From contig MU619240.1 in assembly GCA_025201805.1 (NCBI GenBank), positions 301,690-365,689 on the forward strand: a stretch of DNA of 64,000 bases. Reading direction: 5' to 3'. The position numbers and the translations under genes are program-made. The stretch comes from Parasitella parasitica NRRL 2501. Lineage: Eukaryota > Fungi > Mucoromycota. Under the pieces are notes generated by a model. It made no database searches and had not been told where the DNA came from. It saw nothing but the letters and a program-made list of their open reading frames with translations. Positions 5,163-45,095 of the stretch are shown here, in pieces; the stretch's first letter is position 1; each line of letters starts with the position of its first letter.

Positions 5163-5836
5163 GCGTATAGCCCTAGCCCTGTCATGCTTGGATTATTGAC
5201 TAACTGCATATTCTCATATAACACTAATATCTTATATCTATTGGAACAAAAGAAATAAAAACAACCACTTTGCTCATGTAACTGTATGTTTTTTTCAAAA
5301 TCCATACCGTCAATTGCAGCGTTTGCCGAATAAGCCAGCATTCCATCAAGCGCATCCCATAGTTCCGACTTGTATCGGTAGCAATTTATCTAATTCTAAC
5401 TATTAGTTTGTTTTTGGCCTTTGTGCAAGTGTATACATCTTGATTCCGGCAGCTTTTTACAATCTTTTTCGCAGCTACAAACAGTGAACACCCACTGGCA
5501 ATAAAAGACGAGGTATGATAGCAAATTGCACCAAGTCGGATGGCAATGGAGAACTAATATATATATATATATATATACGCGAATTACAGTCAAGTCTTGG
5601 TGAAAAGACATTTGAATAGTAGATACTTTTGGGCTCGACCTGGTCAAGGGTTTTCGTAGCTGCTTGGGATTCAGGATTAGTGATTCCACTTCTTTCCTCC
5701 TTAAAGACGAGTCTCAATCATTTGGTGACGCCCATTTACTCTTTCCAAACGGTCACTGGGAATTGTCAACCTCGGGAAAGCCACTTTCACTTGAAAAAAA
5801 CTTTCGCTATACATCTTTGGTTGCAGTAAACACAAT

Positions 5837-7342: not shown

Positions 7343-7449
7343 ATTATATTATATATATTTTTGTACATTTTCAGTAATTATAAGTAAAGGAAAAAAAAAA
7401 CAAAATAGCAATTAAAGAACTAGGCTTTTTTTCTATATCGTTTTATGTT

Positions 7450-8758: not shown

Positions 8759-9142
8759 TGAATATAACAAAGAGATGAAGCTGAAAATTTTTTTTTCACT
8801 GAATTCCATCAAAACATCGATGTGGGTGTTGTGGTGAATACGGTCACGACTAATCGGAAAAGTCAACTCCAATCAGTTCAGGATGTCCTAGATCAAATCC
8901 AGGAACTTGGGCATTATTTAGCTTATTTAGCAACAAAAACTCATTTCATTAATGTCTTTTGCAAGTCATTTATCATACAAATTCTGAGTCCCAGATAACT
9001 TTTGACAGCTTGAGGATTTGCATTACCATGGTTACATTCTGCTATAATACGCCAATGAAAATTTTTAGTCATATAAAAACACAAGATCTCAAAATAAGGG
9101 ATATAAGAGCTTGGTAAGCAGGTTTTTTTTTTTTTTTTTTTT

Positions 9143-9232
9143 NNNNNNNNNNNNNNNNNNNNNNNNNNNNNNNNNNNNNNNNNNNNNNNNNNNNNNNNNN
9201 NNNNNNNNNNNNNNNNNNNNNNNNNNNNNNNN
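9143..9232. other. Assembly gap (N run) between poly-T and poly-A
   Basis: Run of Ns. Confidence 0.99.
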
Positions 9233-14180: not shown

Positions 14181-14431
14181 TCCTTTTCTAATAGAGTTTC
14201 TGCTACATTTCATTATTTTTTCTATACCTATTCCATCCTTTTAATTGTGTACAATCAAATTCCTTTTTTATTATAAAAAAAAAAGCTCATTTTTGCCAAT
14301 ATGATGTTCTCTGGACGATGACCCCCTGTTGGTTAGATATCCAATTAAATGTCAGTTTTCCACTGACACCAAGTGGAGGAAGTGGAGCTGTCTCTCTCTT
14401 TCTCTCTCTTGATAAATATACGTATAAAAAA

Positions 14432-14757
14432 ATGACTGATTCTAGCTCAAAGCCTCCTACTCGCCAAGAAAGAAAACATTGCTGGTTTCTTCGTGATCAG
14501 TATTTTGGCTGCCTCGATAAATTAAACATTACTGACCCCACCATTGTTGACAAGAACCCTGAAAAAGCAACTGAATGTTTGGAATTGAAGAAGGGATACG
14601 AAGAAGGATGCATGGCTAGTTGGGTATGTAGCTTGATTTTAGTTGCATCTCTAGTTACACTAATGGCACCTAGGTTGAATACTTTAATAAACGTCGTGTA
14701 CTGGATTTACGGCAGAAACAGTACCTGGAGTTTTCTCAACAGCAATCTGGAAAATAA
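14432..14757 (+). CDS. COA6: Cytochrome c oxidase assembly factor Coa6 (COX6B family)
   Basis: PTRQERKHCWFLRDQYFGCLD...C...CMASW|VEYFNKRR with CX9C-CX10C pattern; intron 14624-14673. Confidence 0.85.
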
Positions 14758-15099
14758 ACTAAATTATTGTACATACCGTATCAAATAAAAGAGTGTGCAA
14801 TGTTGAACGTCATGGCATGTTGGCAATGGAGTAGTTGGTTGCTGACCATCTTGACTTGCATTAATCTGCACTTGATCATGATTGAAACCAACATAATTTA
14901 TGCAGCTCTTAAAAGTAAGCTGTTATCTTTTTGATTCAAGATAGAACTGTGTTTTATTGCTTGATTTTATGGAGCAAACAAGCAATTTAGAATGACATTT
15001 GATTTTGACACTCGTGACCGTAGATTAACGCAAAAAAAACTAAACATGCTTTTTTTTTTTTTTTTTTTCAACACATCTCTCATCGTTATTAGGTTCAAC

Positions 15100-16296
15100 A
15101 TGTCAGACAGTGATACCAACACTCCTGCTCATGGTACAATCGAAAAGAGCATAAACATGGATCAATTATTAGAGAAACAAAAGGAGGAAAGAAATAAATT
15201 AACTGCCAAGATTATTGGTTTGCGTAAAGGTGTGCCTAAAAGCGACAAGAGAAAGAAAAGAGAAGTTGCCTCACGTATTGCAGACTTGGAGTACGATTTA
15301 ACAAAGAAGCACGAGGAGGAAATCAGATCGTTCAAAGCAAAGGAAGCTGGATTGGACCCCAATGCTCCAGAGCCTGAAGTAAGTGATTGTATTTAGAGCT
15401 GGCCCAGCATGGCACACTTATTGTGCTTTTCTAGATGGATGATGGCATCTCGCTAGATCGTCTAGATGAATTGAGCCTGGCAGACGAGCCAAAGAAACCT
15501 GTCAAAGAGAACTCAGTGCAGCAGCCCAAAAAGAAAGTAAACAAAGCTAAATTAAGGATTGAAAAGAGAAACGCTGAAATGGAGCGTATACGCATACAAG
15601 CAGAAGAGGAGGCAGAGAATCAGCCTGATCTGGCGGCCTTGGAGACGGAAGCTATCGGAAAGCTAGTCATTCCTATGAATTTAAGAATCAAGCAAGTGGT
15701 AGCTGATGGGCATTGGTATATTCAGTTGCCGGAAATGCTGTTTTGCATCATTTAATTTCTTTTTCTTTTTTTTTTCTTTTTCACAAATGTAGTTTATATA
15801 ACGCATTTGCAGATCAGTTAAAGGCACGATATGACAGAGATGTTACATACAGGGAACTTCGTAAACTGGCAGCTGAACACATGCGTCAACATCCAGACGA
15901 TTTCAGGCCATTTCTATACTTGGAGGATGGTAATTTTGATAGATATTGTGATGATATTGTGAATACAGCATGCTGGGGAGGTCAGTTGGAGGTAAATGAC
16001 AGAGTTGAAAGTCATTAGTGTTTTACACACAACTGACAAAACAAACCAGGTTTTGGCGTTGGCCAGATCAAGTCAAGTGCCTGTAGATATCATTCAGGAC
16101 GGTGGACCCATTATTAAGATTTGTGATGATGAATATCCAGAAAAACCACCCATTAAACTTGCGTAGGTTGCCAAGAGAAAAATCAAAAAAGAGATGCGGT
16201 TATTTAATAACTCTTGCTTTATGTACTAGATACCATAAGCATCTTTATTCGTTAGGTGCTCATTACAATTCGCTTGTCGACCAATTAAATGCCTAA
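15100..16296 (+). CDS. OTU-domain deubiquitinase (OTUD6B/Otu2-like), multi-exon
   Basis: Charged helical N-terminus. Spliced catalytic motif VADGHC-LYNAF, WGGQLE, YHKHLYSLGAHYNSL. Confidence 0.88.
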
Positions 16297-16457
16297 AAGA
16301 TGAACTTCGCCAGTGGATGATCGTTGTTTTTGCGCAATTTGATGTTTCCAAGATTCAATCTTGACGGAGTTGATCCAAAAACCATACATAATATTGGCAC
16401 ACCTGTCAAAAATTAATAAATTGCCTTTTCTTTCCAGTATTTACATCGACTATTCAT

Positions 16458-17120
16458 ATGCTTGCTGCTGATAATACTAACACTGCTGCTGCTGCAACCA
16501 CCCAAACTGAAAAGGCTACTTTTGGTGCTGGCTGTTTTTGGGGAACAGAACACATTTTCAACAAGCATTTCAAAAAGTCCGGCATCATTAGTACCAAGGT
16601 AGGCTTCATGGGCGGTGAACTGGACAGCCCTATATATAAGCAAGTAAAGACTGGCACTACCAACCATGCTGAAGTGTGCGAAATCGTCTTTGATCCCTCT
16701 CAAGTGTCTTTTGACAGATTGACAGATTTCTTTTACAGTATGCATGGCAAGTAGTATTTAGCTTATGATCAATGCATTGTATTAACAGCAGTATGATAGA
16801 CCCTACTACGGTAAATCAACAGGGCCCTGAGGATATCGGCACGCAATACCGCTCAGTTATCTATTATCACAGTGATGCACAAAAAGCAATTGCTGAAAAA
16901 GTGACTCAACAAGTACAAGAAAAGCGCTTGCCCAATTCACGAATTGTTACCTTGATTGAGCCTGCAACGGTCTTTTTCGATGCCGAGGAATACCATCAAT
17001 TTTACTTGGAAAACAATCCTGATGGGTATGCTGTACGTATCATACCATGTGGCAGGTCATTGACTTGATTATTAACTGCCTTTGTGATAATAGTGTCCCA
17101 CGCATTATCTTCGTTGGTGA
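16458..17120 (+). CDS. msrA: Peptide methionine sulfoxide reductase MsrA
   Basis: GAGCFWG active site, HAEVC, DPTTVNQQGPEDIGTQYRS, AEEYHQFYL; last exon CPTHYLRW-stop. Confidence 0.93.
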
Positions 17121-17200
17121 GCAACAACAATGACAGCAACACAATCACCACACTATATCCAGCATTTTATTATACATTACAGTTGAAACGCATACGATTC

Positions 17201-20012
17201 TTATCTAGAGTTTATCAAACCCGATCCACAATAAAGACATTTACAGCAATTTGTCAATATAAAATTGGACAATGTATCCTGATCTGTTGGTTGTAAACTC
17301 TTGGCATCACACACCAAACACTTGCGAAATTTCGGTGAATGCAAAACAGTTCTTGTCATGCTACAGATTTCCCAGAAATGGCCTGCTTCACATTGCGCAA
17401 GTAAAGAGTAAGAAGTTCCACTATTGAGCAAATTCACAGTTTTCTCGCACACAGGACACTTGTTTCTGCCTTTTCTATCAATGGGTGGGGATTCTGGAGA
17501 AAATGTAGTGGCGTAGGCGATTTCTGTCAATAAGTCGCCAAATTGAGGAAACTTGTCGTGTATTCTGACGTAAACGTTTAATGCTTGCTTTATCAGTGGT
17601 TTGTCGCACAGCGCCAGTGCTGAATCAGAGATTGATACTAGTGCTGCAATATCTTGTTCTGTTAGCTGGCTGAATTCTTTGTCTGGCAGTTGATCAGCGT
17701 GAGATAATATCGAATTCGTATAATTGATTTGCACCGTACGCCTAGCTTTTTGACATGTAGTCTCATATTCTGTTCCGAAATCAAGAGGATCATAATTCTA
17801 CATGAATCGTCAAAAAAAAAAAAAAAAAAAAAAAAATGGCTGTTAGGCTTTGGTTTATGATAGATCCGCGTGGAAGATAACTTGCTTGTAACTCTAATTG
17901 TGCATTGATCATCATCCTTGCAGCAATAGTATCAGTACTGCAATATACCTTCTCTGTAAGAGTACTGCCACTGTGACAAACTGATTAATGTGGACTATTT
18001 ATCTAATAGACACTAGGTAAGTACCTGCTAGCAGTAGGTTCGATATTCAGATCACTCGACAGAGTTGAGATCCACTCAGCCAGTGCTTCATTATCTTCAT
18101 CATCTACCAAGTATTGCAACAATTCTCGTACAAAACCTACAATTGGCTTTACAAATACTACAAGGCAATAAGTATATGATTTTCTTTTTTGTAAAGTTTG
18201 TAATTGTTATTTACCACAATATGGGTCATCTAAATAAGTTTTTGTCAATTGGCAGATGGATTCAATGTCTTGGCCACGTTCTCTATCCAAGATGAATTTC
18301 AAATACATTGAATCGTTACTTTCTCCTCTATAGTGAATATCTACATCTGGCCTCAAACTATCAGAAATGTGTCAGTTTGTTAGAAATACCTGCTACCAGG
18401 CCAACTTACTCAAAAGATAGAGCTGTAAAGATTTGGTTTCTTGTATCGCTTGCTCCCCATAAGAACGGGTGCGCATCAGATGCAGATAATATGTGATCGT
18501 CGTCAGCCTTCAATTGCTCTTCTATCCATTGCTGCTTGTATGTTTGTACTAGCGTTGCGCTCCACATGATAGATAATTGCTTGTCGTATTGCACATCACC
18601 GTTTGATTCAATTTTCAAATAAGTGCATTCACCTTCTACCGTAAAGCCCCTGAAAAGAACGATATTGTTATCATCGCGAACCCAAGTACCGCATGACAAG
18701 CCCAATCCAGACGACAAAAGAGTGTACGCTTGCCAATCTTTCTTTGGTACCAGTTTATCACCCTTTTTCACATCCAAACATATTATTTGAACTCGGACAC
18801 CTTTCGAAATTGCAATCCTGATAATTCCTTTGGCGAAATCGTCAAACATTTTGATTAAAGTGGTGACAGCTCGATCGCCTTCTTCAAACCATACATGTAG
18901 AACCTTCATCTTGATATCCCCGATCCGTGTAGTTCTTGATTTAGAGACAACTGACGTTTTTACTTGAACAGAGGAAATGGCTACTGTTCCATCTGTACAG
19001 GCTGATGCGATGAATGCAATGTACGTGGTGCTGTTGACTTTCTTCCAATCAGTCCATTCAAGTAGGTTGACGAATGATTTATGCGGTGTTATTTTAGTCT
19101 TGTAGTCGAATGAATCGGTATATGCCCAAATGCAGACATCGCCGGCTTTATTGGATGTAGCCAATAATGCAGGCTTGGACGCGAGAGGGTTGGGTATCAA
19201 GCGTTTCGACCAGCTAGCGCCTATATTGACCAAGGTCAGTACACAAAATCAGTAACAGACTACGTCAATGCGTACATAATGTGTGGTGAGGATTGATTCG
19301 GGTTTCATGTTGATGTGAAATTGCATGATCTTTGATCTTGTCTGTCAAATCTACACACTATAGCAAATGAATACGAGTTATATGGCCAAAATTAGAACTA
19401 TTAAGGACCCAACAACGCTTACCAAATTCCAATCGGAATTTGTGGGATCTCTGGATGAAATCTGATACAAAAGTACTCGATGTTTGGTTGTAACAACTGT
19501 CAAAAAACAACTAGATCCACCAAAACCATTAATTCCAATATTCATTGAACGAGACTCTTTCTTTTCTATACCTTTGATTAGGTGAGAGGTTCGGCGGCGA
19601 CCATCTAGCCAAGCGAAACGATTCTTCATTTAAGAAAGATGTTTCCACTTTATCGTTTTCAGCTAGTGCGGATCTCAAGTTAGAAACAAATAGGTGCATT
19701 TTAACTTTCCCTATATGACGGATCGTTGCTACTTACTGATCATGACAGAGTCAGCTATTCTTTCTAAAGGCGGTAAAATGATGCCTACATACTTATACTT
19801 TTCTTTTGTGGATAGCATCCCAACCAAGATTGGTGTCTGTAGAATGAAAGAGTTAGTGAATATGGTTCAGCACTCTATCGTTGACTTTTTTACGATACCA
19901 CAATATAAACACCTTTATCATTGCAGATAACCAATTGGTTGTCTTCACTCCATTGAATGCAGTCTACGAGAAAGGGGTTTCCTTTGAAAGAAATGGCAGG
20001 TTGATTTTCCAT
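17201..20012 (-). CDS. Transcription factor IIIC 90-kDa/delta-like subunit (WD40 N-terminus + C-terminal zinc finger), multi-exon
   Basis: Start MENQPAISFKGNPFLVDCIQWSEDNQL. WD-like middle exons. C-terminal CPVC...CEAGHFWEICSMT...CLVC...CLYCG pattern. Confidence 0.75.
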
Positions 20013-20553
20013 GATAAACAAAAGTATTACGTTACAAACGCGCCGATGCCTGAATTTCTAGCTTTTTGTGCTGTGCTCCTGGTTGTTTCGGAGTCACCCT
20101 GTTTTCGGTTGTTTTACTCGAGTGAATTGAACATTGGGTCTACTAAAGTATCCATGTATTGAACATACGCTCTGGATCTATTCCAGCACTCATCAGTTAT
20201 TGCCTCAAAAGAGTGATTTTAGAATCCCTGTATACTTAAATTGCCTTGTACTGAAGTTCGTAATGCTTGTCCCTTCTTGTAATAATTTAATTTTCTGTCA
20301 ACATTGGGAGGTATCAAAGAAATTGTATCATAATGCACTATATTTGGGCTTATTGTATCGCAAGGAGACGGATCAACGCTCATAGTTATACTCCTCCTCC
20401 GCTTGATAATTGAAACAGGTGCAGGGGTTTACGACAATGTAAAAGACAAAAAATGGGTTTTTATATTAAAAAGAAAGGAGGAAAATTATCAGGAGTAGAC
20501 AGGAAAAAAAAGAAAAGTATAGTATATTTAGCCAAATCCAGGGAGGCAATGGC

Positions 20554-21427
20554 TTACTCGTACTGTATGATGAATTTTTCATCATATTGCTGTTGCTGCT
20601 GCTGCTGTTGCTGCTTCTGCTGGTGGTTCGTATATGGCCAAGCAGAATATATGCTCTGTTTTTCGTCTTTTGAGGAATTTACATGAGCGTATAATGGCAC
20701 AGTGACGAAATCAACAGAAGAGTATCTATTGAATTGCTTGCTTGTGAGTGCGTTATAACGATCATCAAACTCGATAACAATAGACTATGATGAATTTGTT
20801 AAAGCTGTGCATATGTATACCGTGTACATAGAAACTTACATAAATTGTCTTCATGTTGGAATTATTAGCTATATTGATTTGCTTTGTAACATCATTGAGA
20901 TCGGACCCGTTTTTACTGAAGCGATAATTGATGCCTCGAATGTTTTCTGTTGCATTGATACGATTGCAAATAGTAAGAATACCAAGCTCAAACTTGAAAT
21001 ATATATATGCATATTATTTAGTAGAACTTCTTTGTGTAATCAATTATTTTTTCTCACTCTTTGACGCAAGACTCGATGTCTCCAAATAAAAAGCAGAGTA
21101 GTAAGCAGCATGAAGAATGGCAGAATGACTAACCCATATGAACTTTTGGTATATAGCCACAATAAATAGTTTCCAATGATAGCAGCCATCCAGAGAACCC
21201 AAATCAGCACAAACCAAACGTATCTGTTGCCTGGAGGAGGATTCTTACGAATTGACTGATTCAACAGATTAAAAGTGGAGCAGAAGTCTTCCACTGATAA
21301 CTATATATTAATGAGTTGATTAGCATCTATATGACAATATTATTGGTATACTTACATATCCTTGAAGATCAAAAGTGTACTGATCGTCAAATTTCTTGTT
21401 TATGAGCGCGAAACGGGCTGATTTCAT
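20554..21427 (-). CDS. Hypothetical two-TM membrane protein, 4 exons
   Basis: Splices in frame: MKSARFALINKKFDDQYTFDLQGY|LSVEDF...two hydrophobic helices...|FELGILTICNRINATENIRGINYRF...|SIVIEFDDRY...polyQ-stop. Confidence 0.7.
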
Positions 21428-21797
21428 ATTATAAAAAAAAAACGAAAGGAATGATAATGCTGAATGAGTGTAATGGGAGTTTCGTAATGTGTACAATTAA
21501 AAAAGCACTTGATGATAAAAGTGGAAAGAAAATACTTGAGTTAAATGCAAACCTCTCAATTCTAATATATAGCTGTATATAAAGGAAAAAAAAAAATGGT
21601 GCCCATCATTTTGCCTTTTAGCGACTAAAAAGGGAGCAAAGAAATATAATATAAAAAAGTATCTAAACAATGTTGTATCAAGTATAAAAGCGATCGATAA
21701 ATTTTTAGGAGAAACGCAATGAATTTTCTAGCAGGAATTATCCTGAATTTTATTTAAACATGTTGTATAGCATGTACTCATACACAATTAAAAACAC

Positions 21798-23404
21798 TTA
21801 GGCAAATCCAAGGATCCTATTGTGAAGATTCAAAGCTTTCTTCTGACCTTCGGTAGCATCAGAGGAAAGCACTGGGTAGGGGATTAAGCCCATGTTCAAC
21901 TTTTCAGCGTCATTTGTAGTGCTTGGTTTAACTCTGTCGTGGAACGTTTCTTCAAAGTGGTTACCAGGAAAATCAGGAGGAGTCCTATATTGATTAAAGG
22001 CAATAAATAAAACGATAAAGTATATGCATATATTAAAATATACACGCTATACTCACAGGCCTTTTTCAAACGCATCTCTTTGTATTTTGACATATTCTGA
22101 ATTGATACGACAAAGAGGTACAGAAGGAATGTAAAGAACAGAAGAATCAACCTTGGAGTCATTTTTTCGCTCTACTGAATGCACTTGGTCACAGTGCCAA
22201 AATACACAATCACCGGGCTTGACATCAGGCATAGAAACCATAGTATCAATGATATGTGGATAATCAGTCTTCCCGATACTTTGACATAAACCAGGTAAGG
22301 CACCAAGATAATCGCTGTTGAGGCATTTTTTTTAGCAATTACTTTTAAAGTTTCTATATTTCATCTCACTTCTTATCAATGTACTCTTCAATCAAAGGCT
22401 TCATCAAGAAATAGGCAACAGATTGCCGTAAAAGAGGACAAACACGAAGAGTTCCGGCGCCAGTCTTGATGTCAGACATAGCAATCCAGCCTTGGAAGTT
22501 TCTAAAGACTGAGCAGCCACCAGGAGAATTATAATAGTCCATACGTGCTTCGACACGATGTGTAGCATCGAATGAGTCATGTTTCTATATGAAATCGGTG
22601 CTTTAGTAAATCTAACAATCTGAAATGCTACGCCATTTACCTCCCACTCGCCATTAAAGATATTCGTGTAACATTTACGATATTCAGGGTCTTGCCAGCC
22701 TAATGTTAAACTTGGTTATCTTTCCATGTAATGCAGTAAAATATTAAATTTATATTACGTTCAATAGAGCCACTGTCAACATGTTCCTGTAAAGCAAAGC
22801 TATCATCCCCGGGGTTTCGAAGACGAAGACGATCACAATAACCCAAGTTCTTGGTCAAGTCAATGACAGTATTATCCTCAGTATGCCAAAGTTGATTCAA
22901 AGCCAAAGTAGCAGCTTCAAAGCGGGGATGGCTTCTAGCAGCTACTTGTGAATGAGACCAATATACCTCCCACACCTGGGGATCGTTCTTGGGAGATCCT
23001 GCAATCTGGCCAGCATGATTCTCGATATAAGACTTGATCTGCTCCTTGTAACCACGAGCTTCTTGTTCAGGAATAACGTTTTTGATAACGACGCAGCCTC
23101 GGCGGCGGATCTCAGCTTCTATCTTGGGAGGGAAACAGCCATTGTTGGCTTGAATTTCCTGAAAATCAACCTGAGGAACAACAGATGAGCCCTTCCTCTT
23201 GATCTCGAGTGTCTCTTTTTCGAACGATTTCAAAAGTGTTTGGTAAGCCCTGTTGAGAATAGATGGGTCTTTGGGTGCAATCTCTTTCTTCAATTTAAGA
23301 AGGCTGAGATCAAGTTGTGTTTCTTTGCCACCTAAATGGGAAAAGACAGAGCTAATGTCACCTTTTGGCTTGATAGATTGTGGCTGGGAGCTCAAGGCCA
23401 TCAT
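21798..23404 (-). CDS. DUF1479 (YbiU/Gig2-like) putative oxygenase, multi-exon
   Basis: GDISSVFSHL, IRRRGCVVIKNVIP, WEVYWSHSQVAARSHP, YCDRLRLRNPG, HVDSGSIERW, FRNFQGWIAMS, PGDCVFWHCDQVHSVE. Confidence 0.88.
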
Positions 23405-23878
23405 TGTGCGAATATCCAATTGATGAAAAGAAAGACGATACTTTGATAAATCAATCGAAAACATGCCCCTCTATTTATAGTTGCTTTACATTCTAGGTAT
23501 TGGAGGTTAAGCTTGTTGTTTTTTCAATATCAGCGGACCGACAGAGGGCCACGGAAAAATGGCCTTGATCTTAATTGAGCAAAGGATCAGGAAGAAAAAG
23601 GCTCCGGGCAAAATTTTCTTGGGAATCAATGGTTTGGGCCTTTCATGTCGGATGAACTTACTTTGACTATAAAAATCACTTGTGCAATAATTAAATCATA
23701 GGTTCTACCCTATTTGTATGTGGATATTCGGTTGACTTGTGAGATGATCGTCTGCATTGAAAATCCCATCATTGTGTGCACTAAGAAAAATTGCCCTCTT
23801 GCCCTCTTGCCCCTCAATAAGATAAATGTAGCATAAAAAAAAAAATACATCCAGTGAAATATTTATTCTAGGACTCTA

Positions 23879-25011
23879 CAGTCAACGAAAAAAGGTTGGC
23901 CCAATAAAAAAAATAATTGGTCAGCTTGAAATGAAAATGGGCCACCGATTTTGAAAATGGGTCACTAAGACAAAAATGGGTCACTGCTTTGAAAATGGAT
24001 CATTTAATACGAAAATGGGTCACCAATAAAGAAATTTAATGCATGCTTTTTATTTTGCCTCTTATAATCCTTTTTCACAATTCAAGCATCTCTGCCAGAA
24101 CGTCAAAGAATGCTTTATCCAATTCTTGCAGTCTTCTCTGCTGATGTAAAATGATGCATTGCGAATACGATCAGAGATTTTTTCATTCTGCCTGACAGAA
24201 GAGGGATCGTTATTTACAACAGTCTTCAGCTTGGACCAAAACTCTTCGATTGGATTCAAAAAAAGGAGAAAAAAGAGGCAAAAAGAGAAGTTTATAGCCA
24301 CGTTGACCAAGCCAATATTCAATAAGTGCAGCCTTGTGAATTGGATGCATTGTCAAGAACTAGATATTTGTAGCTCATGTTAGCCGTATCAAGTGTATTC
24401 AAGGAAGTCATTGCTGGTAGTACCCTTTTTCTTGAGGGCCTGAGATTTCTCACCAGTTCGAGTTCGCTTTCCACTCCTAGCACCAAGTAAAACTTCTTTT
24501 CTGGATAATGTGATTAAACCACTTTTTACAAATAGCACCCAAGATGCTGACATTTGCTCCCTTCGTTTGAACATCAATTTTGCAAGGTGTTCCAGCCTCA
24601 GACCATCCATATGAGCGATGCATACTCCTATTAAATCCAGCTTCATCCAAGAACACGCATTTCATTCATAAAATCTATGTTCTGGCTAACCCAGTATGCT
24701 ACCGCATCTCGTCTTTTGGCAACAGTCTCATCCGTGTTCCTGCCATAATATCTAGGAATGATACGCTTGTAGGTTAGGCGACACTTCTTCTTCTTCATAT
24801 GATTTTCCACTGATCTAAGGGTGATCTGTATATCTCTAAATTCTTTTGACAGGTTGTCTGTAACAGCTTCGACTGTCAATGTTGGCTCATTAGCCAGCAG
24901 CTCAAAGATAAATACAGTATGTTCGTCTTTGAGTATTGCTGGTCGTCCCTTTCCTACTTTGGTTGCGATAGAATCAGGGAATCCCTTTTCAACTATTTCG
25001 CTTGTCATTTG
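23879..25011 (-). mobile_element. Tc1/mariner (IS630-like DDE) DNA transposon, copy A; decayed, 5' part lost in gap
   Basis: TA at 23877-78 followed by terminal CAGTC... repeat (23879-24035). Frameshifted transposase fragments with FLDEAGF, VLDNAS and NPIEEFWSKLK. Confidence 0.9.
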
Positions 25012-25756
25012 NNNNNNNNNNNNNNNNNNNNNNNNNNNNNNNNNNNNNNNNNNNNNNNNNNNNNNNNNNNNNNNNNNNNNNNNNNNNNNNNNNNNNNNNN
25101 NNNNNNNNNNNNNNNNNNNNNNNNNNNNNNNNNNNNNNNNNNNNNNNNNNNNNNNNNNNNNNNNNNNNNNNNNNNNNNNNNNNNNNNNNNNNNNNNNNNN
25201 NNNNNNNNNNNNNNNNNNNNNNNNNNNNNNNNNNNNNNNNNNNNNNNNNNNNNNNNNNNNNNNNNNNNNNNNNNNNNNNNNNNNNNNNNNNNNNNNNNNN
25301 NNNNNNNNNNNNNNNNNNNNNNNNNNNNNNNNNNNNNNNNNNNNNNNNNNNNNNNNNNNNNNNNNNNNNNNNNNNNNNNNNNNNNNNNNNNNNNNNNNNN
25401 NNNNNNNNNNNNNNNNNNNNNNNNNNNNNNNNNNNNNNNNNNNNNNNNNNNNNNNNNNNNNNNNNNNNNNNNNNNNNNNNNNNNNNNNNNNNNNNNNNNN
25501 NNNNNNNNNNNNNNNNNNNNNNNNNNNNNNNNNNNNNNNNNNNNNNNNNNNNNNNNNNNNNNNNNNNNNNNNNNNNNNNNNNNNNNNNNNNNNNNNNNNN
25601 NNNNNNNNNNNNNNNNNNNNNNNNNNNNNNNNNNNNNNNNNNNNNNNNNNNNNNNNNNNNNNNNNNNNNNNNNNNNNNNNNNNNNNNNNNNNNNNNNNNN
25701 NNNNNNNNNNNNNNNNNNNNNNNNNNNNNNNNNNNNNNNNNNNNNNNNNNNNNNNN
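25012..25756. other. Assembly gap (745 N)
   Basis: Run of Ns inside the left arm of the inverted repeat. Confidence 0.99.
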
Positions 25757-25887
25757 TAAGACTAACTTGTGCTTTCGACTAGACCGTAGTCAAATTCAAC
25801 GTCGCGATCTCATTGCAAATTTACAGCGTCAAGATATGGCTTTGTTACGTTGCAGTGGAATTTAAACGTTACGGTTTTGTTACGGTT
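25757..25887. repeat. Left inner inverted-repeat block (pairs with 30996-31126)
   Basis: 131 bp equal to the reverse complement of 30996-31126 with two visible mismatches. Confidence 0.95.
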
Positions 25888-26271
25888 TTGTTACGGTTAC
25901 GTTACGGTTACGTTACGGTTACGTTACGATTACGTTACGGATTTGTTACGGCTTTGGTACGGTTTTGTTACGGTTACGTTCGGTTTTGTTACGGTTACGT
26001 TACGGTTACGTTACGGTTACGTTACGACTTTGTTACGGTTTTGTTACTGTTACGTTACGGCTTTGTTACGGTTTTGTTACGGTTACGTTCGGTTTTGTTA
26101 CTGTTACGTTACGGTTACGTTACGGTTTTGTTACGGTTACGTTACGGTTTTGTTACTGTTACGTTACGGCTTTGTTACGGTTTTGTTACGGTTACGTTAC
26201 TGTTACGTTACTGTTACGTTACGGATTTGTTACGGTTTTGTTACGGTTACGTTACGGTTTTGTTGCGTTAC
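25868..26271 (+). repeat. 11-bp-period minisatellite (GTTAC+NNNNNN), ~36 units
   Basis: Units GTTACGGTTTT, GTTACGGTTAC, GTTACGGCTTT, GTTACTGTTAC, GTTACGGATTT and similar. Confidence 0.95.
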
Positions 26272-26365
26272 AACCAAATCATGTTATTTTCTCCGGAACT
26301 AATTTCCCCTAAAAAAAAAAAGTTATTTTCTAATTAAAGTTTTATTTATTTCTCTTCTTTTTGTA

Positions 26366-26974
26366 ATGTCTAGCCACCAATTTTCCTCTAACGACTACTT
26401 GAACAATGAGCAGGTTTGCAAGATACTCTCTGAAGATCAAAATATCATCGACATCATAACGGAGAATTTATTGAATGTGTATGAAAATACATACATGTGT
26501 GATTCATTCGAAATTCTCGGGAATGGAGTAAGAATCACATATAAACCACGTTTAGTAAATCATTCTGCTTTGCCTCCTATCATCTTAAATTTTCAGCCAT
26601 ATATTAATCAAGATGCAATGACAAATGCCATTGATCGATGTTACCAAGTTCAGGTACAAAAAAATCAACTTCCGTTGATATTATTCATTTGTTCTGAAAG
26701 ACTCTCGGATCCAATTTTGGACTTGTTTGTACCTTTACAAGGCAATTCGTACTTGTATTATTTACCAGACACTTTCTGGTCACAGAAATGTCTATTAATA
26801 TCTGAACACTCTTTCAAACGAAATATCGGTGACGACAAAAATATTAATGGACTTGCCGTTCTAGCAATGTTTCTTCTCCAAGAAAATCAGGCAATAGCAA
26901 AGATTGGGAAATCGAAAGACACTGCCACTCAGGAACTGTACATTAAATGCAAAAATATTTTTTATTTTGATTAA
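26366..26974 (+). CDS. PD-(D/E)xK/Rpn-like fold protein, apparently catalytically degenerate; paralog of 29886-30956
   Basis: Uninterrupted 202-aa ORF, alignable by eye to the minus-strand protein: IIDIITENLLNV~VKNIITAAILDV, PIILNFQ~PIIVEVQ, FWSQKCLLI~YWARKGYLI, LAVLAMFLLQE~FAAVSNFILQQ. Confidence 0.6.
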   Translation: MSSHQFSSNDYLNNEQVCKILSEDQNIIDIITENLLNVYENTYMCDSFEILGNGVRITYKPRLVNHSALPPIILNFQPYINQDAMTNAIDRCYQVQVQKNQLPLILFICSERLSDPILDLFVPLQGNSYLYYLPDTFWSQKCLLISEHSFKRNIGDDKNINGLAVLAMFLLQENQAIAKIGKSKDTATQELYIKCKNIFYFD

Positions 26975-27105
26975 TCTCCTTGTTAAATATTAACAGGGAT
27001 GACAGTATTTATAAAATAAAATAAAAAAATGAAAAATAAAAACAAAGACTTTAAAAAAAAACAATTATATAACCAGGTTAAATTGTCATGTAAAAGTGTT
27101 TTCTA

Positions 27106-29355
27106 AAGTACATCAACTTTTGCGAGCATTATACTTTTCACAAGACTTCAAGACAGCGCTTTTGGAAACCAAGACAGAGTGGCTTTGGAGGTACTATTGG
27201 CCGTATGTATACCGTTTCGCCAAGAGATATTGAAAAATACCATTTTCGGCTCTTACTCTTGCATGTTCCTGGAGCTAAGTCGTTTACAGATCTTCGCATC
27301 ATTAATGGTCAGTTGCATCCCACTTTTCAAGCTGCCGCACGCGCTCTAGGACTTTTGGCAGATGATACTGAATGGTCTGCAGCTATGACTGAGGCGTCTT
27401 TGTCGCAAACTCCAGCTTCTTTGAGAAAGCTATTCTGCATTCTGATCGCATTCAGTAGTGTAACTGATCCATATCAATTATGGTTGGATCATAAAGAAAG
27501 TATGGCTGAGGATTACCTCTTTGCGTATCAACGAGATCCAAGAAATGTGCATGAGCTTCGCTTCGAAATTTCTATTGAAATGTATGAGCACTGTCTCTTG
27601 GACTTAAATGATATCTTGGCAGACCATTGTTAAGATTTGAAGTCAATGGAAGGGTTCAGCAGCGTATTTACCAATACTGATACCCGAACCGATAGAAGCA
27701 CAAACCACTCCAACACTAATGAGAGAATGCATAGTCTGCTGTATGCTGAATCATTAGATGCATCTGATCCTGATCTTTTGTCTTTCAATGAAAGCCAAGC
27801 TTTAGTTTATGATGCTATTAAAGCATCTGCTTTTCTCGAAAATCCCCAAGGATCCCGCATTTTCTTCGTTGATGGTCCAGGTGGTACTGGTAAGACATCT
27901 GTGTTTAATGCACTCCTTGATCGTGTCAGACGAGAAGGTGATATTGCAATTGCTGTGGCATCAAGTGGAACTGCTGCATTATTGCTCAAAGGCGGACGTA
28001 CTGCTCACTCTACCTTCAAGATACCTTTAGAAGTAGGCAATACTAGCATGTGCGACATTTCGCCCCGCTCTAATATAGCATCATTTATCCAAAGAGCAAA
28101 AATTATTGTTTGGGATGAATGTTCAATGATTAGCAAGGACTTGATAGCAACAGGTGATGGCTAATTTCGTGATATAATGAATGCCGATCTCCCTTTTGGT
28201 GGCCTTCTCATGGTTTTTGGTGGAGATTTTCGTCAGATTTTGCCGATAATCCGTGGTGCCAGCAGATCGGTTATTGTCGGCCAGTGCTTGAACAAAGCAT
28301 GCTTTTGGCCATTGGTGGTCTCAATGAAATTGCGCACAAACATGAGAGTTCAACAGGCTCTTCAAACTGACAATCCAGGTCTTGCCAATGAACTTCAACA
28401 GTTCGCTGATTATCTACTTCAGGTTGGTCAAGGTACTGTTCCTACAATTACTCTGCCCAGAGACATACCTACAGATTTTATCCAAATTCCTGAGGAGATA
28501 CTCATATCTGGAGATAAATTGATTAATTTGATAAGAAGCATATTCTTTGATATTGCGACTGCGGCCAACAGTCTTGATTACTTTGCTGGGAGGGCTATCT
28601 TGGCTGCAAAAAACAGAGATGTCAAGGTGATAAACGATATACTCTTGGAGTGCATTGAAGGGCGCAAAATGTCGTACATCAGTAGTAATCAAGCCTGCGA
28701 AGATGAATCTCAATTGACAATGCCGGTTGAGATGCTTAACACCATCGAAAATGGGTCTTTGCCTCCTCATATTCTTGATTTGAAAATTGGTGCTCCAATT
28801 ATGGCAATCAGAAATATTGATCCTGCGGCTGGCATCTGTAATGGTATGAGAAGATTAATCGTCAATTCACTCATGACGAATGTCATCGAAGCAATCATTG
28901 CTACTAGGCCCAATGCTGGCAACATTGTCCTTATCCCTAAAATCAAATTCATCTCTCTTGCCACTGAAGGCCTCTCACCTTTTGATTTTCAACGAATCCA
29001 GTTTCCCGTAAGACTGGTGGTATTTGCGATGACCATCAACAAGTCGCAAGGGCAAACGCTAAATTCTGTTGGTTTGTACCTGCCAGGCCATTTATTTGGT
29101 CATGGTCAACTGTATGTCGCATTATCACGTGTGAGGACGCCAACTTCTGTCAAAGTAATGATCTCTGATGATATATCCCGAATAGACAATCATACTGGGT
29201 CATATACTCACAATATCGTTTATCAAGAAGTTTTCTACAATGGTAAAACAGGCCTGCGGCAGCACGAGCTGTACACCACTTTAGTGAAGGGTAAATTTAC
29301 CGTAGCGAAGCGAAGGTGAAAATTTAACCGAACGTGGCGGTGTGATACAGCTCGT
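27106..29355 (+). mobile_element. Helitron 3' fragment: PIF1-type helicase pseudogene without the Rep/HUH domain
   Basis: IGRMYTVSP...RLLLLHVPGAKSFTDLR, FFVDGPGGTGK, ASSGTAALLLKGGRTAHSTFKIP, WDECSM, FGGDFRQILP, AMTINKSQGQTL, HGQLYVALSRV, NIVYQEV. One frame with in-frame TAA at 27631 and 28162; terminal hairpin ending CTCGT. Confidence 0.9.
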
Positions 29356-29885
29356 TAATGGTAAAGATGTTAAACTTGACTACTCAGATAACGTCTGTTA
29401 TAATAGTTATTATATATGTAAAAGACCCCTGTATCAACGATGCTAAAATGAAGTTATTATAGATGTGTTTAGAATGAAACTAAATATAGATCATGAATCA
29501 GATCTATAATCTAGCTTTCTAAGCACTGTGAATACAACATCCCTTCATTAACTGCAACTTGTTTCAGTGAATATGGTAACAATGTTTTTTATCTTATCTT
29601 TTTAATTGAAAGAACTTATTTGAAAATAAAAGCACAATCAAAGAACTCTAAAGTTTGGTGAAAACCATTCATAGTAGCAGATAATTTTAATGTTTCTTAC
29701 AGTTCACATCCCAGGTACGAAATATGAACAAATAATACAAGTAAAGAACAAAAGGATTTTTTTTTTGCGTGAATTTTGTTGAATGATAAATACGGTGTTA
29801 TTAAATAAGGAATTGCTATAGGTATCGAGTTTATGACAAACATATTCATAATTATAGTGGATACGATGGTTAAAAAAGACACATT

Positions 29886-30956
29886 TTAACTTTTTGTCTT
29901 GAATCTGTTATACACTGTGCGCAACACTTCTGAGGTTTTGTAATGGATAACGTTGGTTTGTTTCTTTAGCATATCATGACAACCACGCCAGTTCATTCGA
30001 TTTCTAGTTTCTTTGTACCGCTCAACAAAATCCATGGTGTTTTCAAATCTCTCTTCATCTTGGCTAACCAGTTGAGTCTTTTCTGGCTCCTCCTTATCAA
30101 TATTCGCATCGTCAGCTGATCGTTTTACTTGCTTTAACTTTGATATTCCAAGTAGAGCTTCATTTTGAATACAGGGGGAATCATATTGTAAACGTTCCGC
30201 TATCTCTGGGATTTGTCGGTAATGTTTAACTCCCACACCACAAGCACCGTTGATAGCATTAAGTAATTGTTGCTCTCGATCAATATTTTCTTGTAAGACT
30301 TCTGTTGCAATTGAAAATAATTGTCTAATAGTCAGATTTTCCAACGAGTTATTTTCCAATAAACTAGCCTGTTGCTGAAGTATAAAATTTGAAACTGCAG
30401 CAAATGGATCAGTTGAGCTGGTAAGCGTAAAAACATTTTGAAGTCTGATCAAATATCCTTTTCTGGCCCAATATTCACAGTTAAGTGATAAAGCACCATT
30501 AACATTTGATAGGCGCATATTTTCAGTAGGTATTGATACATGTTCGGGAGCGAATACCAGTAGTACAGGGAAGACTTGATAACGACGATAAGCCATTACA
30601 CAATAATGAACAACTCTTGCCATGAAATTGACATCAACTGTTCTCTGAACTTCAACGATTATAGGTGATTGCTTTAGGGATCTATCTAATGGTTCATATA
30701 AAACGTCTGATCTTGATCCGTCAGGCCATTCTGCATCTCCAACTCTGTAATTATCACCATTAACATCCAAAATGGCAGCCGTAATGATGTTCTTTACGAA
30801 AGGATGTTTTAAAATAGTTTTACTGGTCTTGTCAGTACCAGGGCGCTCGACAAATGGGATTCTTGATGTTAACAGGGATTCTATTTAACAGTTAATTAAT
30901 AACTTTTCTAGTTGAAAAGAACTACAAGGTTATATAGACTTACGTTTATCAGTCAT
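29886..30956 (-). CDS. PD-(D/E)xK/Rpn-like nuclease-fold protein with C-terminal Myb/SANT-like segment, 2 exons
   Basis: ATG 30956; 63-nt GT-AG intron 30943-30881 splices in frame (MTDKQSLLTSRIPFVERPGTDKTSK...). Motif WPDGSRSDVLY...PIIVEVQ...FMARVVHYC resembles the D...ExQ...R..xY pattern of PDDEXK_2/Rpn proteins. Confidence 0.7.
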
Positions 30957-30971
30957 TTCAATAAAAAAAAA

Positions 30972-31126
30972 GAAAGCGTAACAAAGCCGTAACGTAACCG
31001 TAACAAAACCGTAACGTTTAAATTCCACTGTAACGTAACAAAGCCATATCTTGACGCTGTAAATTTGCAATGAGATCGCGACGTTGAATTTGACTACGGT
31101 CTAATCGAAAGCACAAGTTAGTCTTA
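30972..31126. repeat. Right inner inverted-repeat block with four GTTAC 11-mers (read on - strand)
   Basis: Reverse complement of 25757-25887, including GTTACGGTTTT/GTTACGGTTAC/GTTACGGCTTT/GTTACGCTTTC. Confidence 0.93.
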
Positions 31127-31222
31127 TTCTATTGATACTTTGAAATAAATGAAAATAAACTAAAGAGAACGATAAGCTACCAAATCCGTACTATAGCAAA
31201 AGGATTCGAGAATTAGTTTCTA

Positions 31223-32683
31223 CAGTCGACAAAGGTTGGCCCAATAAAAAAAATAATTGGTCAGCTTGAAATGAGAATGGGCCACCGATTTTAACAAAAA
31301 TGGGATCATTTAATACGAAAATGGGTCACCAATAAAGAAATGCAATATGAGGACTAGCCAAATTCTCTCTTCTTTTTCTCTTCTTGAATTTTTTATATTG
31401 CTTAACATAAACAAAGAATACAATTTTGACAGTGAGACAGCACCTGTGATGATACAATCATACATGGACTGGGAAGAGACTGCAGCACAAAAAGAAGCTA
31501 AGAGGAAGACCAAACCTCACTCCGAAGAGCCCCCCCCCACCCCTTGATGTAGTAAAAAAGGAAAGGGGATCATACATCACCAAGAACGAAGCAAAGGTAG
31601 TCAATTTGATCAGTTTATTGCAAGAATTTGAGAATATGTCTATCAGTGAAGCGGGTAGAAAGGTAGGGCTCTCCAAGTCAACAGCTATTCGTAAAGTCAA
31701 GCAGTGGAATGCAAATGACAAGCGAAATAGTTGAAAAGGGATTCCCTGATTCTATCGCAACCAAAGTAGGAAAGGGACGACCAGCAATACTCAAAGACGA
31801 ACATACTGTATTTATCTTTGAGCTGCTGGCTAATGAGCCAACATTGACAGTCGAAGCTGTTACAGACAACCTGTCAAAAGAATTTAGAGATATACAGATC
31901 ACCCTTAGATCAGTGGAAAATCATATGAAGAAGAAGAAGTGTCGCCTAACCTACAAGCGTATCATTCCTAGATATTATGGCAGGAACACGGATGAGACTG
32001 TTGCCAAAAGACGAGATGCGGTAGCATACTGGGTTAGCCAGAACATAGATTTTATGAATGAAATGCGTGTTCTTGGATGAAGCTGGATTTAATAGGAGTA
32101 TGCATCGCTCATATGGATGGTCTGAGGCTGGAACACCTTGCAAAATTGATGTTCAAACGAAGGGAGCAAATGTCAGCATCTTGGGTGCTATTTGTAAAAA
32201 GTGGTTTAATCACATTATCCAGAAAAGAAGTTATACTTGGTGCTAGGAGTGGAAAGCGAACTCGAACTGGTGAGAAATCTCAGGCCCTCAAGAAAAAGGG
32301 TACTACCAGCAATGACTTCCTTGAATACACTTGATACGGCTAACATGAGCTACAAATATCTAGTTCTTGACAATGCATCCAATTCACAAGGCTGCACTTA
32401 TTGAAGATTGGCTTGGTCAACGTGGCTATAAACTTCTCTTTTTGCCTCTTTTTTCTCCTTTTTTTGAATCCAATCGAAGAGTTTTGGTCCAAGCTGAAGA
32501 CTGTTGTAAATAACGATCCCTCTTCTGTCAGGCAGAATGAAAAAATCTCTGATCGTATTCGCAATGCATCATTTTACATCAGCAGAAAAGACTGCGAGAA
32601 TTGGATAAAGCATTCTTTGACGTTCTGGGAGAGATGCTTGAATTGTGAAAAAGGATTATAAGAGGCAAAATAAAAAGCATGCA
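31223..32683 (+). mobile_element. Tc1/mariner (IS630-like DDE) DNA transposon, copy B; frameshifted pseudogene, right TIR missing
   Basis: TA at 31221-22 then CAGTCGACAAAGGTTGGCCCAAT TIR (31223-31341). HTH (SISEAGRKVGLSKSTAIR), GRP, FLDEAGF, VLDNAS, NPIEEFW spread over several frames. Identity to copy A stops at 32683. Confidence 0.9.
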
Positions 32684-32975
32684 ATATATATCTTTGAATT
32701 CGCTATCAAATAAAGGTTAAAGAAGATTCTAGCAATAATAACATTTCCTATTTTGTTCTGACGGTCTCGAGAAATTCTTTCGAGAAATTTCTTTCGACCT
32801 AGAACTGAACAATCATCATAATGTTTAAATGTTGATAGATTATTTCAGATTTGTAACCGACAATTAAAAAAAAACCATAGCATATTCAATTCCTATCCTT
32901 ATAACTTCACATTTATCATTTTATGTTACATCTGTTGAGTTAAGTCACCGTATCCAATATCGAGGCAAGAATATA

Positions 32976-34400
32976 CAGTCAGGGCTCGTTATAACGGACA
33001 AAAATATGTTTTGTATAGTGAGTTATCCCCTATTCAGAATTCGATACTCTACAGTACAGCTTCTGGAATTTGAAATCTACCAGAAGCTTATTATGAAGCT
33101 TAGCTTTTGTTAGTAAAATTACCCTCAACCTCAACCCTAATCTCTACTAGAGTTTCTATTCTACATGCTTAGCATTAGCAGCATAAAAAAAGGAGTTCCT
33201 GAGCTGATATTAAGCATTATTATAAGTATCAATGTAATAGGGCTTCTCTGTCATTAGTAATTAGCAACTTATGAACAAATAACTAGGGATTATTACAGCA
33301 AAAGATTGTATTCATTAGTTATCCTCGCCTGCTTCCAATTCGATGAGCCACAACTGTTGTATCATATTACTATGAGGAAAGGTATACTCGTGGCATCAAA
33401 AATACTTACTTTATAGAGCTGTGTCATGTACTAGAATTGACATTGACGTGATATCATCTCCAGATAGATACTTTTTACAGCTTAAAAGCAAGAACTTTAG
33501 CTTTGTATGCCATTTTTTGATTAATTTTCATAATCAAAAGTGCCCTGAAAACACCAAAAATAGTATCCATTGGGAAAAAACAATATTATATATGATTTTG
33601 GTGCAATTTGAGCATGATTTTTTTTTCGATGCAAAATCACGGATTTTTTCTATTTTTTCCTTGTATCCACACATCCAAAATCATTGATTATGCATAATCA
33701 TCGATTTTGACCTCAGAAATGCGACTTTTTACTATAGCATATATTGGAGGAAAATGATCGTAAAAGACCATTCCTTGATCTGAAAAACTAAAAATGCGCT
33801 CTGATTAAGCAAAATATTGACTTTTCCCTCTTGATATGTTTTGAAGTTTTCTCAGCATAATTCCTTTCATAAGCATATGGGGATTATGAAATTATACCAT
33901 CTTGTAAAGCGCCCAAAAATACAGCTATTATCATAGACTGACAGTCGTGGTATGCATAGTATCAAAGAATGATATCTTGTCTTAAAGAAGTAATTTTGTT
34001 TTCTAATTGTACAAATGGAGTTTCTGAAAGAATTTTTCCTTTCTGATTTTGGACGCGTTTAATCTCCGCTATCAATGAAAAATGGTGTTATTTTGAAGAA
34101 AAGCCCTAGCTTTGAGAAGCCCCAGCTTACCCATTTCAAGAGAAAAAAAATTGTAACTTAGTTTAATTTAATGGTGTTTTTGTTGGCTTTCCAATGGTAG
34201 TACTTGCATGTCTTTATCTGGCCTGGCGATCTCACGCTCCGATTTTCATAAATACTTTTCCGAATAAAGCCAGGAAAGTCGCTTCCTTCATTCGATGGCA
34301 ACTTAAAAAAGTACAAAAACTTGCTCCAAACTATGCAAATGTGCAATAAAAAGATGTCTTGTAGTTCAATGCATTACTTTGCATTACTTTTTTTTTTTTT
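32976..34400. mobile_element. Probable non-coding DNA-transposon remnants
   Basis: TA+CAGTCAGGGCTCGTTATAACG at 32974 resembles Tc1/pogo-type termini. AT-rich, gene-free, with short hairpins. No matching second end found. Confidence 0.3.
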
Positions 34401-44999: not shown

Positions 45000-45025
45000 T
45001 TTCCTTGATTATCTGTGAGAAAAAG

Positions 45026-45095
<70 letters not shown>
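45026..45095. repeat. 70-nt poly(A)/poly(T) homopolymer
   Basis: Directly visible. Confidence 0.95.

Follow-up and report, generated by a model that had tools for sequence, protein, structure and literature searches.

A Parasitella parasitica locus that is probably a dead copy of a natural composite Tc1 transposon carrying paired nuclease-like genes

Introduction

Composite transposons are a standard bacterial route for moving genes, and an engineered parallel, the Sleeping Beauty 'sandwich' vectors, was reportedly described by Zayed and colleagues in Mol Ther in 2004. Long inverted arms are also a feature of the foldback elements Galileo and Drosophila FB, in the latter of which subrepeats build the arms out to the termini, and in the human Y palindromes and the plastid inverted repeat the arms are kept identical by arm-to-arm gene conversion. 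The nearest published analogue that we found for the locus considered here is bacterial: Tn630-NC1, reported in 2024 as the first IS630-based bacterial composite transposon, has transposase genes transcribed from the body outward and ends that carry TA (PMC11544213). Among fungal elements, ToxhAT is reported to be a 14-kb hAT-bounded transposon carrying ToxA (PMC12506042). No description of a natural eukaryotic IS630/Tc1 composite transposon was found in the literature searched. Here we analyse a 64,000-nucleotide stretch of Parasitella parasitica NRRL 2501 (contig MU619240.1, positions 301,690 to 365,689; hereafter the window) in which two inverted Tc1 copies enclose a convergent pair of nuclease-like genes, A and B, and we propose that this locus is likely a dead copy of a natural composite, or 'sandwich', Tc1 transposon.

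Results

The window (positions 301690-365689 of contig C4 in an assembly of 32.8 Mb and 450 contigs) contains two arms that mirror each other around the gene pair (Table 1). The longer mirrored stretch is ungapped over 984 nt (24028-25011 inverted against 31712-32695) and 99% complementary, with 8 mismatches counted base by base: 5 within 24040-25011, which an initial annotation of this DNA had already recognized as the reverse complement of 31712-32683 with at least 5 substitutions, and 3 in the last 12 nt, where the similarity fades. A shorter stretch nearer the genes (25757-25914 inverted against 30969-31126) spans 158 nt at 94% complementarity. It includes the '131-bp block' of the same annotation (25757-25887 against 30996-31126), for which 2 mismatches had been given and exactly 2 are present, at 31031 and 31104; the block is a real mirror, but merely the gap-adjacent visible part of a mirrored non-Tc1 segment of approximately 200 bp, which a genome search placed in two positions only, namely the two arms. 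As had also been claimed, the symmetry passes beyond the Tc1 end: the right Tc1 copy begins TA/CAGTCGAC (31221/31223), and the mirrored sequence at 30969-31220 is non-Tc1 DNA. Tc1 copies are common in this genome, and two of them might by chance have come to flank a gene pair independently; we give that explanation next to no credence, because the non-Tc1 DNA is mirrored inside each inner terminal inverted repeat (TIR), Tc1 enters both arms at the same TA, the two copies share their frame breaks, and their identity is 99% with one another but no more than 92% with full-length copies elsewhere (85-92% for the other long family copies in the genome). The earlier judgement that two independent insertions do not suffice therefore stands.

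Both arms were next to be distinguished from an artefact in which scaffolding mirrored one arm across a gap, an explanation with some initial appeal in that a gap of 745 N lies inside the left arm, at the place where geometry puts the mirror of the right arm, and in that the Backusella assembly described below is likewise gapped in one arm. The test relied on the depths of Logan contigs in three independent samples (X1, X2 and X3, in that order in what follows). A unique contig (29328-30809) had depths of 112.7, 32.8 and 32.1; the junction specific to the right arm, running from gene B through the short array into the block (30780-31016), had 107, 26.2 and 28.7; and the alternative junction, where the block leads into an array that is longer by 27 letters, had 94.9, 28 and 34.2. 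By comparison, the contig common to both arms (30996-31260, comprising the block, 95 bp and the start of the Tc1 TIR) reached 219.7, 48.6 and 60.1, and 31494-31656 reached 211, 34 and 55.6. Arm-specific junctions thus occur at approximately 1x and the shared inner segment at 1.9x, 1.5x and 1.9x; therefore, both arms are real, and the sequence hidden by the gap appears, from these depths, to be present twice in at least two samples. On geometry and depth, the gap would be expected to contain the rest of the left Tc1 copy (its 5' third, with the inner TIR) and 95 bp of flanking non-Tc1 DNA, and continuity across it is suggested by the depths and by the gap-free arms of a copy in Mucor velutinosus (0 N). 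Together with the 8 arm substitutions, these data uphold the earlier argument against a simple assembly mirror, which we consider extremely unlikely. Mirrored arms, interrupted by a scaffold gap in both the window and the Backusella assembly, seem regularly to break short-read assemblies.

The arms have the marks of a Tc1/mariner element. A TIR abuts TA, in the form TA/CAGTCRACGAAAAAAGG, at 23877-79 and 31221-23 in the window and at the outer ends of four related loci (L057, L058, L068 and L069, described below). The left outer TIR carries 19-20-bp GAAAATGGGTCAC subrepeats, as does the inner TIR of the right copy. Both transposase genes read outward (left copy on the minus strand, right copy on the plus strand) and are broken into the same three open pieces, which were read separately and unmended; among profile matches, these window copies gave a weak HTH_32 match alone. 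One Backusella arm, however, has an intact transposase frame of 455 codons with a DDE_3 domain (PF13358, 4.2e-27), the motifs FLDETG, LVLDNASIHK and NPIEEFW, and a counted DD34E spacing. No remnant of the right outer TIR was found within the window, and the window copy is dead and no longer able to move because this TIR is missing and both transposase genes are broken. To the right of the truncated Tc1, from 32816-33500 onwards, lies a high-copy repeat (at least 40 copies at 77-86% identity, and 13-28x depth in the runs), which may have some bearing on the absence of the right outer TIR.

A search for relatives of B in Mucorales, followed by retrieval of the loci, recovered the whole composite elsewhere, in the order Tc1, flank, array, gene pair, array, flank, Tc1, with TA-flanked Tc1 ends. 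The M. velutinosus locus (L057) has both genes, both arrays and two arms (7145-9195 and 12608-14663) that match over 2,069 nt at 97.8%. In Backusella circina (L058), the arms match over 1,210 nt at 98.7% and it is the left transposase frame that is open. A cut-down copy in Helicostylum pulchrum (L068) retains 93-96% DNA identity; a Parasitella parasitica locus (L069) is a 2.6-kb miniature with 848-nt arms (99.1%) that have the same internal deletions; Sporodiniella (L070) has older fragments (80-87%); and Mucor saturninus and Circinella keep B and a GTTAC array without Tc1. Every intact outer end is TA/CAGTCRACGAAAAAAGG beside unrelated flanks. Two inverted copies of one element thus bracket unrelated DNA in the window, L057 and L058, and the complete unit, its parts in unchanged order, occurs at different sites, with different neighbours in the window, L057, L058, L068 and L069. 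A 32-nt pattern taken from the inner junction had no match in metagenome contigs. The proposal of a composite mobile element with arms of approximately 1.7-2 kb carrying a cargo is borne out by this recurrence of one block at unrelated sites in other genera; the mirrored non-Tc1 segment is also found in both arms of L057.

The genomic surroundings of the block differ between loci. In the window, it lies between a Gig2-like/DUF1479 gene (1.8e-53) and RPN9 (PSD13_N, PCI and Rpn9_C domains); in M. velutinosus, it lies between Lipase_GDSL and UGGT genes; and no alignment was found between loci outside the composite. In the window's genome, the M. velutinosus flanks have their matches on contig C93 (105309-105795 at 69% and 115671-119415 at 74%), and this Lipase-UGGT region contains neither B nor the inner segment, both of which occur on contig C4 only. 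Backusella host genes match the window's genome at approximately 69-72%, in short conserved stretches only, and the DUF1479 protein of the window is 59% identical to that of Backusella and 68-91% identical to the Parasitella counterpart. In contrast to the 69-74% identity of adjacent host genes, the composite is 92-98% identical in DNA between the closest three genomes, and the synonymous divergence (dS) of gene B from the L057 copy is ~0.02. The block is therefore far younger than the divergence of the genomes, which indicates that it probably moves as a unit and has been transferred horizontally among Mucorales. A static inverted segmental duplication, inherited vertically and given new neighbours by later rearrangements, is strongly disfavoured by the same figures and by the orthologous Lipase-UGGT interval without the block; although inverted duplications with gene conversion are common, and the composite sits at a breakpoint of a Gig2-to-OTU inversion relative to a Joint Genome Institute (JGI) relative, we hold this explanation to be very unlikely.

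That inversion extends from the DUF1479 gene to the OTU gene (window 15201-23375) and was seen relative to the JGI relative (L062); the composite occupies one of its junctions (between DUF1479 and RPN9), and a closer relative, represented by the Logan contig L064, shares the other. Both L062 and L064 share the gene order around DUF1479, with L064 ending 772 bp from the gene. Elsewhere in the window, a run of 76 A (97% pure) occupies 45020-45095.

Within each genome, the arms appear to have evolved together. Over the shared 984 nt, arm identity is 99.2% in the window, 100% in M. velutinosus and 99.2% in Backusella, compared with 95.8-97.9% between genomes, and the breaks in the transposase frame are common to both arms of a genome but different between genomes. 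The arms being closer within than between genomes, concerted evolution is indicated; arm-to-arm gene conversion would explain their likeness, with fold-back copying primed at the inverted arrays as an alternative that could also account for the unequal array lengths. The initial annotation had offered, as its second possibility, a TIR element whose inner arms are the GTTAC block and whose arms were homogenized. This was right in part only: the arms are homogenized genome by genome, and the arrays belong to the nuclease-gene module, to which we now turn.

Genes A and B are convergent and belong to one large family, with 37 and 26 matches in the genome, whose members often form convergent long/short pairs (for example, on contigs C68, C60, C153, C73 and C39). 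Direct comparison of the two by BLASTP gave an E value of 1.4, and the homology is visible only via the family; the idea that they are simple duplicates within the mirror was rejected. Exon 1 of gene B is ATGACTGATAAAC, 7 bp from the short array, and analyses of B used the long exon alone, the two exons being left unjoined. B-type members conserve SDVLY...P-I-I-V-E-V-Q (IIVEVQ), a motif that A-type members do not have; in gene A, the catalytic-type residues are replaced, with ILNFQ instead of IVEVQ. B is predicted to combine a PD-(D/E)xK-like core carrying D...ExQ at the N terminus with a long helical hairpin and, at the C terminus, a module of three helices. In a structural model (mean predicted local distance difference test score (pLDDT) 73, with an N-terminal alpha/beta core), all Foldseek matches were to PD-(D/E)xK nucleases, including NucS/EndoMS (probabilities 0.91 and 0.87), Hjc, TnsA and NucC, although these were weak matches over approximately 75 residues with every E value above 0.1. 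Among 18 family members, sub-threshold Pfam matches were seen to DUF2887 (PF11103; 4 members, best E value 0.0032) and Transposase_31 (PF04754; 3 members, 0.0057), and no Rpn/YhgA profile match exceeded the curated threshold. Atlas leads for the family stood at 0.85; the family profile gave nothing at E ≤ 1 against solved structures; and a wide VIA-align search was uninformative, being dominated by the helical hairpin. The C-terminal 65 residues of B, folded alone, reached a pLDDT of 61, too poor for a structure search, and a Myb/HTH-like (helix-turn-helix) DNA-binding role for this module is a guess. An 'Rpn-like nuclease fold' is a reasonable description of the modelled A/B proteins, short of proven membership. 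Of the earlier claim that two nuclease-fold genes lie between the arms, the gene pair is real and the fold would be PD-(D/E)xK-like, on matches that are all sub-threshold or weak.

Structural modelling further suggests that A pairs with B. The modelled complex had an interaction score (ipSAE) of 0.66 (0.65-0.66 in three runs), compared with 0.00 for the best of three controls. When the scoring tool was calibrated, 51 of 78 solved complexes attained the mark, as did 2 of 108 mismatched pairs. The partners had pLDDT values of 78 or more, and contacts agreed between runs to 66% or better. Homologous helices (B 47-62 and A 82-100) make the contact; A and B being paralogues, the interface may go back to a homodimer of their ancestor. 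For gene B, the ratio of nonsynonymous to synonymous divergence (dN/dS) is approximately 1 or above between recent copies (1.45, 1.2-2.0) and 0.21 against the older M. saturninus copy (dS 0.28), as would be expected if selection acts on the gene during its spread and ceases once it has settled in a genome.

The GTTAC arrays are a family-wide trait of the nuclease-gene module. In loci of ~3.5 kb, from which the family architecture was read, short CG-containing tandem arrays (period 5-12) lie just upstream of the genes and are inverted on the two sides, with 21 arrays in 43 kb (8 of 12 loci); control loci (63 kb), the remainder of the window (55 kb) and housekeeping loci of relatives (32 kb) had none. 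Their units are specific to the locus: GTAGCG/GTATCG (C68 and C45), GACACC x30 (C150), TACGGA/CCGTATCGTAT (C60), TATGATACGGA x26 (C39), ATCGGCAAC (C10), TGTCGA/GGTGTC (C153) and AACCGTAACAA (C73). In the window, a repeat finder placed the left array at 25866-26259 (period 11, 36 copies). In the M. saturninus locus (L059), the B orthologue is preceded by two GTTAC arrays separated by a 570-nt inverted repeat (3518-4087 and 4355-4924, 98.2%), which is probably a small foldback or MITE-like (miniature inverted-repeat transposable element) insertion.

Several related loci also join such genes to Tc1-type elements. A second, unrelated sandwich (L040, G000:C45:31456-35265) has 1-kb mirrored arms (1-983 and 2531-3528, 96.8%), which contain an inward-facing Tc1-like transposase that is 23-33% identical to the window's, and GTATCG/GTAGCG arrays at the inner ends around a B-type gene. 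The closest paralogous A/B pair (54-56% amino acid identity; L032, G000:C73:130952-134260) lies between 55-nt TIRs (161-215 and 2874-2928) starting TACAGTGAGAACGG; with its AACCGTAACAA array inside, this locus looks like a non-autonomous Tc1/mariner-type element. The association of the A/B-type module with Tc1-type vehicles is thus recurrent (C45 and C73). In Rhizopus arrhizus (L060, 5178-7122), an annotated 512-amino-acid protein (P0009) consists of a DDE_3 tail and a B-type nuclease (52% amino acid identity) with a TATGTTACGGC array between; the annotation has probably fused a Tc1 fragment and the passenger gene into one model.

These loci raise the alternative that the nuclease module is itself the mobile agent, in the form of a foldback-like element that captured Tc1 in its arms and was moved or copied by the A/B nuclease acting on the inverted arrays, via homing or recombination. 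The inverted CG arrays of A/B paralogues genome-wide, the C45 paralogue between arms with a different transposase, and the persistence of B and its array without Tc1 in M. saturninus and Circinella are all in its favour. However, at intact outer ends the homology between genomes stops exactly at the tip of the Tc1 TIR beside TA, the arrays lie at the inner rather than the outer arm ends, and the activity and target of the A/B nuclease are only putative. We regard this alternative as improbable and prefer the composite transposon.

Between A and B, the window copy has an additional fragment whose Pif1 frames (27205-29319) match PF05970 (4.6e-37 and 6.7e-20) and Pif1_2B (PF21530). The initial annotation had placed this Helitron helicase within the cargo, but the fragment, absent from L057, L058, L068 and all other copies compared, is a later insertion, a late passenger that does not belong to the cargo. 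In its place M. velutinosus keeps 59 bp of spacer between A and B, and one 2,590-bp contig of run X8, from a related organism, joins an inverted array, ~900 bp and gene B without it. The fragment has at least 40 relatives in the genome, many with the same 3' end and with varied 5' truncation points, which fits a Pif1-encoding element present in many copies that end alike on the 3' side. Of the Rep (HUH) domain and the 5'-TC/CTRR-3' termini with a 3' hairpin that mark a Helitron, no Rep domain was found in the copy, which looks 5'-truncated, and the 3' end is ...CAGCTCGT followed by T; the fragment can be called Helitron-like at most.

Table 1 Features of the composite locus in the window and of its counterpart in Mucor velutinosus (L057).
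Feature	Position	Strand	Basis or remark
TA dinucleotide at left outer end (Tc1/mariner target)	23877-23878		sequence
Outer (3') TIR of left Tc1 copy, left end of composite	23879-24040	-	matches outer ends of L057 and L058
Visible portion of left Tc1 copy (transposase gene, 3' two thirds)	23879-25011	-	inverted repeat, 99%
Assembly gap, 745 N, length estimated only	25012-25756		site of expected mirror of 31127-31711 (585 bp)
Left mirrored non-Tc1 segment, part visible beside gap	25757-25865	+	inverted repeat
GTTAC array, 11-bp unit ACGTTACGGTT, ~36 units, ends 95 bp upstream of gene A	25866-26271	+	tandem repeat
Gene A, 202 amino acids, B paralogue	26366-26974	+	family comparison
5'-truncated Helitron-like fragment, Pif1 helicase in three broken frames	27111-29354	+	Pfam and absence elsewhere
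Gene B, ~335 amino acids, two exons	29886-30962	-	exon 1 30950-30962; long exon 29886 to ~30885
Short GTTAC array, ~4 units, 7 bp upstream of B start codon	30969-31017	-	tandem repeat
Right mirrored non-Tc1 segment, 203 bp	31018-31220	-	lies between inner TIR and array
Inner (5') TIR of right Tc1 copy, TA in front at 31221-31222	31223-31346	+	repeats and sequence
Right Tc1 copy, transposase gene broken, without outer TIR	31223-32695	+	stops at 32695
L057, left side	outer TIR 1418-1603; inner TIR 8566-8709		RVT_1 retroelement inserted 1604-7143; then Tc1 body
L057, centre	B 10001-11071; A 12403-11798		205-bp flank; GTTAC arrays; A with one stop
L057, right side	inner TIR 13099-13242; outer TIR 14648-14848		array, flank, inner TIR, Tc1, outer TIR

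Discussion

Taken as a composite transposon, the locus would have arisen and spread as follows. Two inverted copies of one DD34E Tc1, with transposases facing outward, form arms of ~2 kb, and the mirrored ~200 bp of non-Tc1 DNA and the GTTAC arrays would represent the inverted upstream regions of the convergent A/B module. The Tc1 transposase would engage the outermost pair of TIRs and cut and paste the whole block at a TA, and the block would have spread horizontally among Mucorales. The mirror symmetry of the arms would be the work of arm-to-arm gene conversion, or of fold-back copying primed at the inverted arrays, which would also maintain it. The window copy would then have decayed, through the same breaks in both transposases, the loss of the right outer TIR and the landing of the Helitron-like fragment between A and B.

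Several observations weigh against this account. The gap interrupts the left arm, and the inner part of the Tc1 has a depth in X2 nearer to 1-1.5x than to 2x. In Backusella, a gap of 1,127 N lies in one arm (12902-14028), the centre is rearranged and A is split, a rearrangement that may partly reflect mis-assembly. In L057 and L058 a TA stands at both ends, a 2-bp mark that every Tc1 insertion would leave and that alone is no proof that the whole block was inserted in one step. No nucleotide-level empty site was found for the window copy, the right end of which is missing and for which the intergenic DNA of available relatives could not be aligned, and no transposition event has been observed. 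Finally, the mirrored non-Tc1 DNA has two candidate origins: Tc1 may have inserted once into an upstream region that was already inverted and then been copied across, or fold-back synthesis may have produced the mirror.

A further idea, which we think rather unlikely, is that the A/B pair forms the core of an undescribed selfish module, in which a heterodimer of active-type and inactive-type Rpn-like nuclease subunits would recognize its own locus-specific tandem arrays, inverted on either side of the genes, cut or recombine there, and build and homogenize mirrored arms from an adjacent transposon. If this were true, the module would assemble composite carriers for itself and travel on them from one species to another.

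Mucorales include opportunistic pathogens and industrial moulds. The locus and its copies in other genera suggest that, in this order, a eukaryotic Tc1 pair can move foreign genes as a unit across genera, offering a natural counterpart to the engineered Sleeping Beauty sandwich vectors, and they expose a large uncharacterized family of fungal nuclease-like proteins with co-varying flanking arrays, the role of which in recombination or element spread is now testable. The interest thus lies in a class of sandwich elements rather than in a single locus.

Comparison with known systems places the locus between several of them. As in foldback elements, subrepeat copy number differs between the arms (36 compared with 4 units here); unlike in those elements, the arrays are confined to the inner arm ends and the termini are ordinary Tc1 TIRs, so that the locus is not a foldback element in that sense. 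As in large palindromes, the arms are more alike within than between genomes, although the palindrome here is a mobile unit of ~8 kb. ToxhAT, as reported, resembles it as a fungal cut-and-paste-type element with a host-relevant or foreign gene that is horizontally shared, and differs in belonging to the hAT superfamily, in not having paired complete elements as arms and in carrying an effector. The gene products would share with the Escherichia coli Rpn/YhgA-like recombination-promoting nucleases (Transposase_31 and DUF2887) a PD-(D/E)xK-like core with D...ExQ, through weak profile matches; unlike these, A and B are eukaryotic, form a couple of active and inactive type, and have extra helical and C-terminal modules. 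The Sleeping Beauty sandwich likewise has two complete inverted Tc1-family elements flanking a cargo and uses the outermost ends, whereas the present locus is natural and has spread in Mucorales. As in Tn5, Tn10 and Tn630-NC1, two inverted copies of one element bracket a cargo and the outer ends bound the unit, and the IS630/Tc1 superfamily is shared with Tn630-NC1; unlike in these bacterial composites, the host is eukaryotic, the arms contain mirrored non-transposon DNA and arrays and are homogenized, the cargo is a nuclease-like pair, and the spread is across genera. The features peculiar to this sandwich are its mirrored non-transposon DNA, the homogenization of its arms, its paired nuclease cargo with private arrays and its cross-genus spread.

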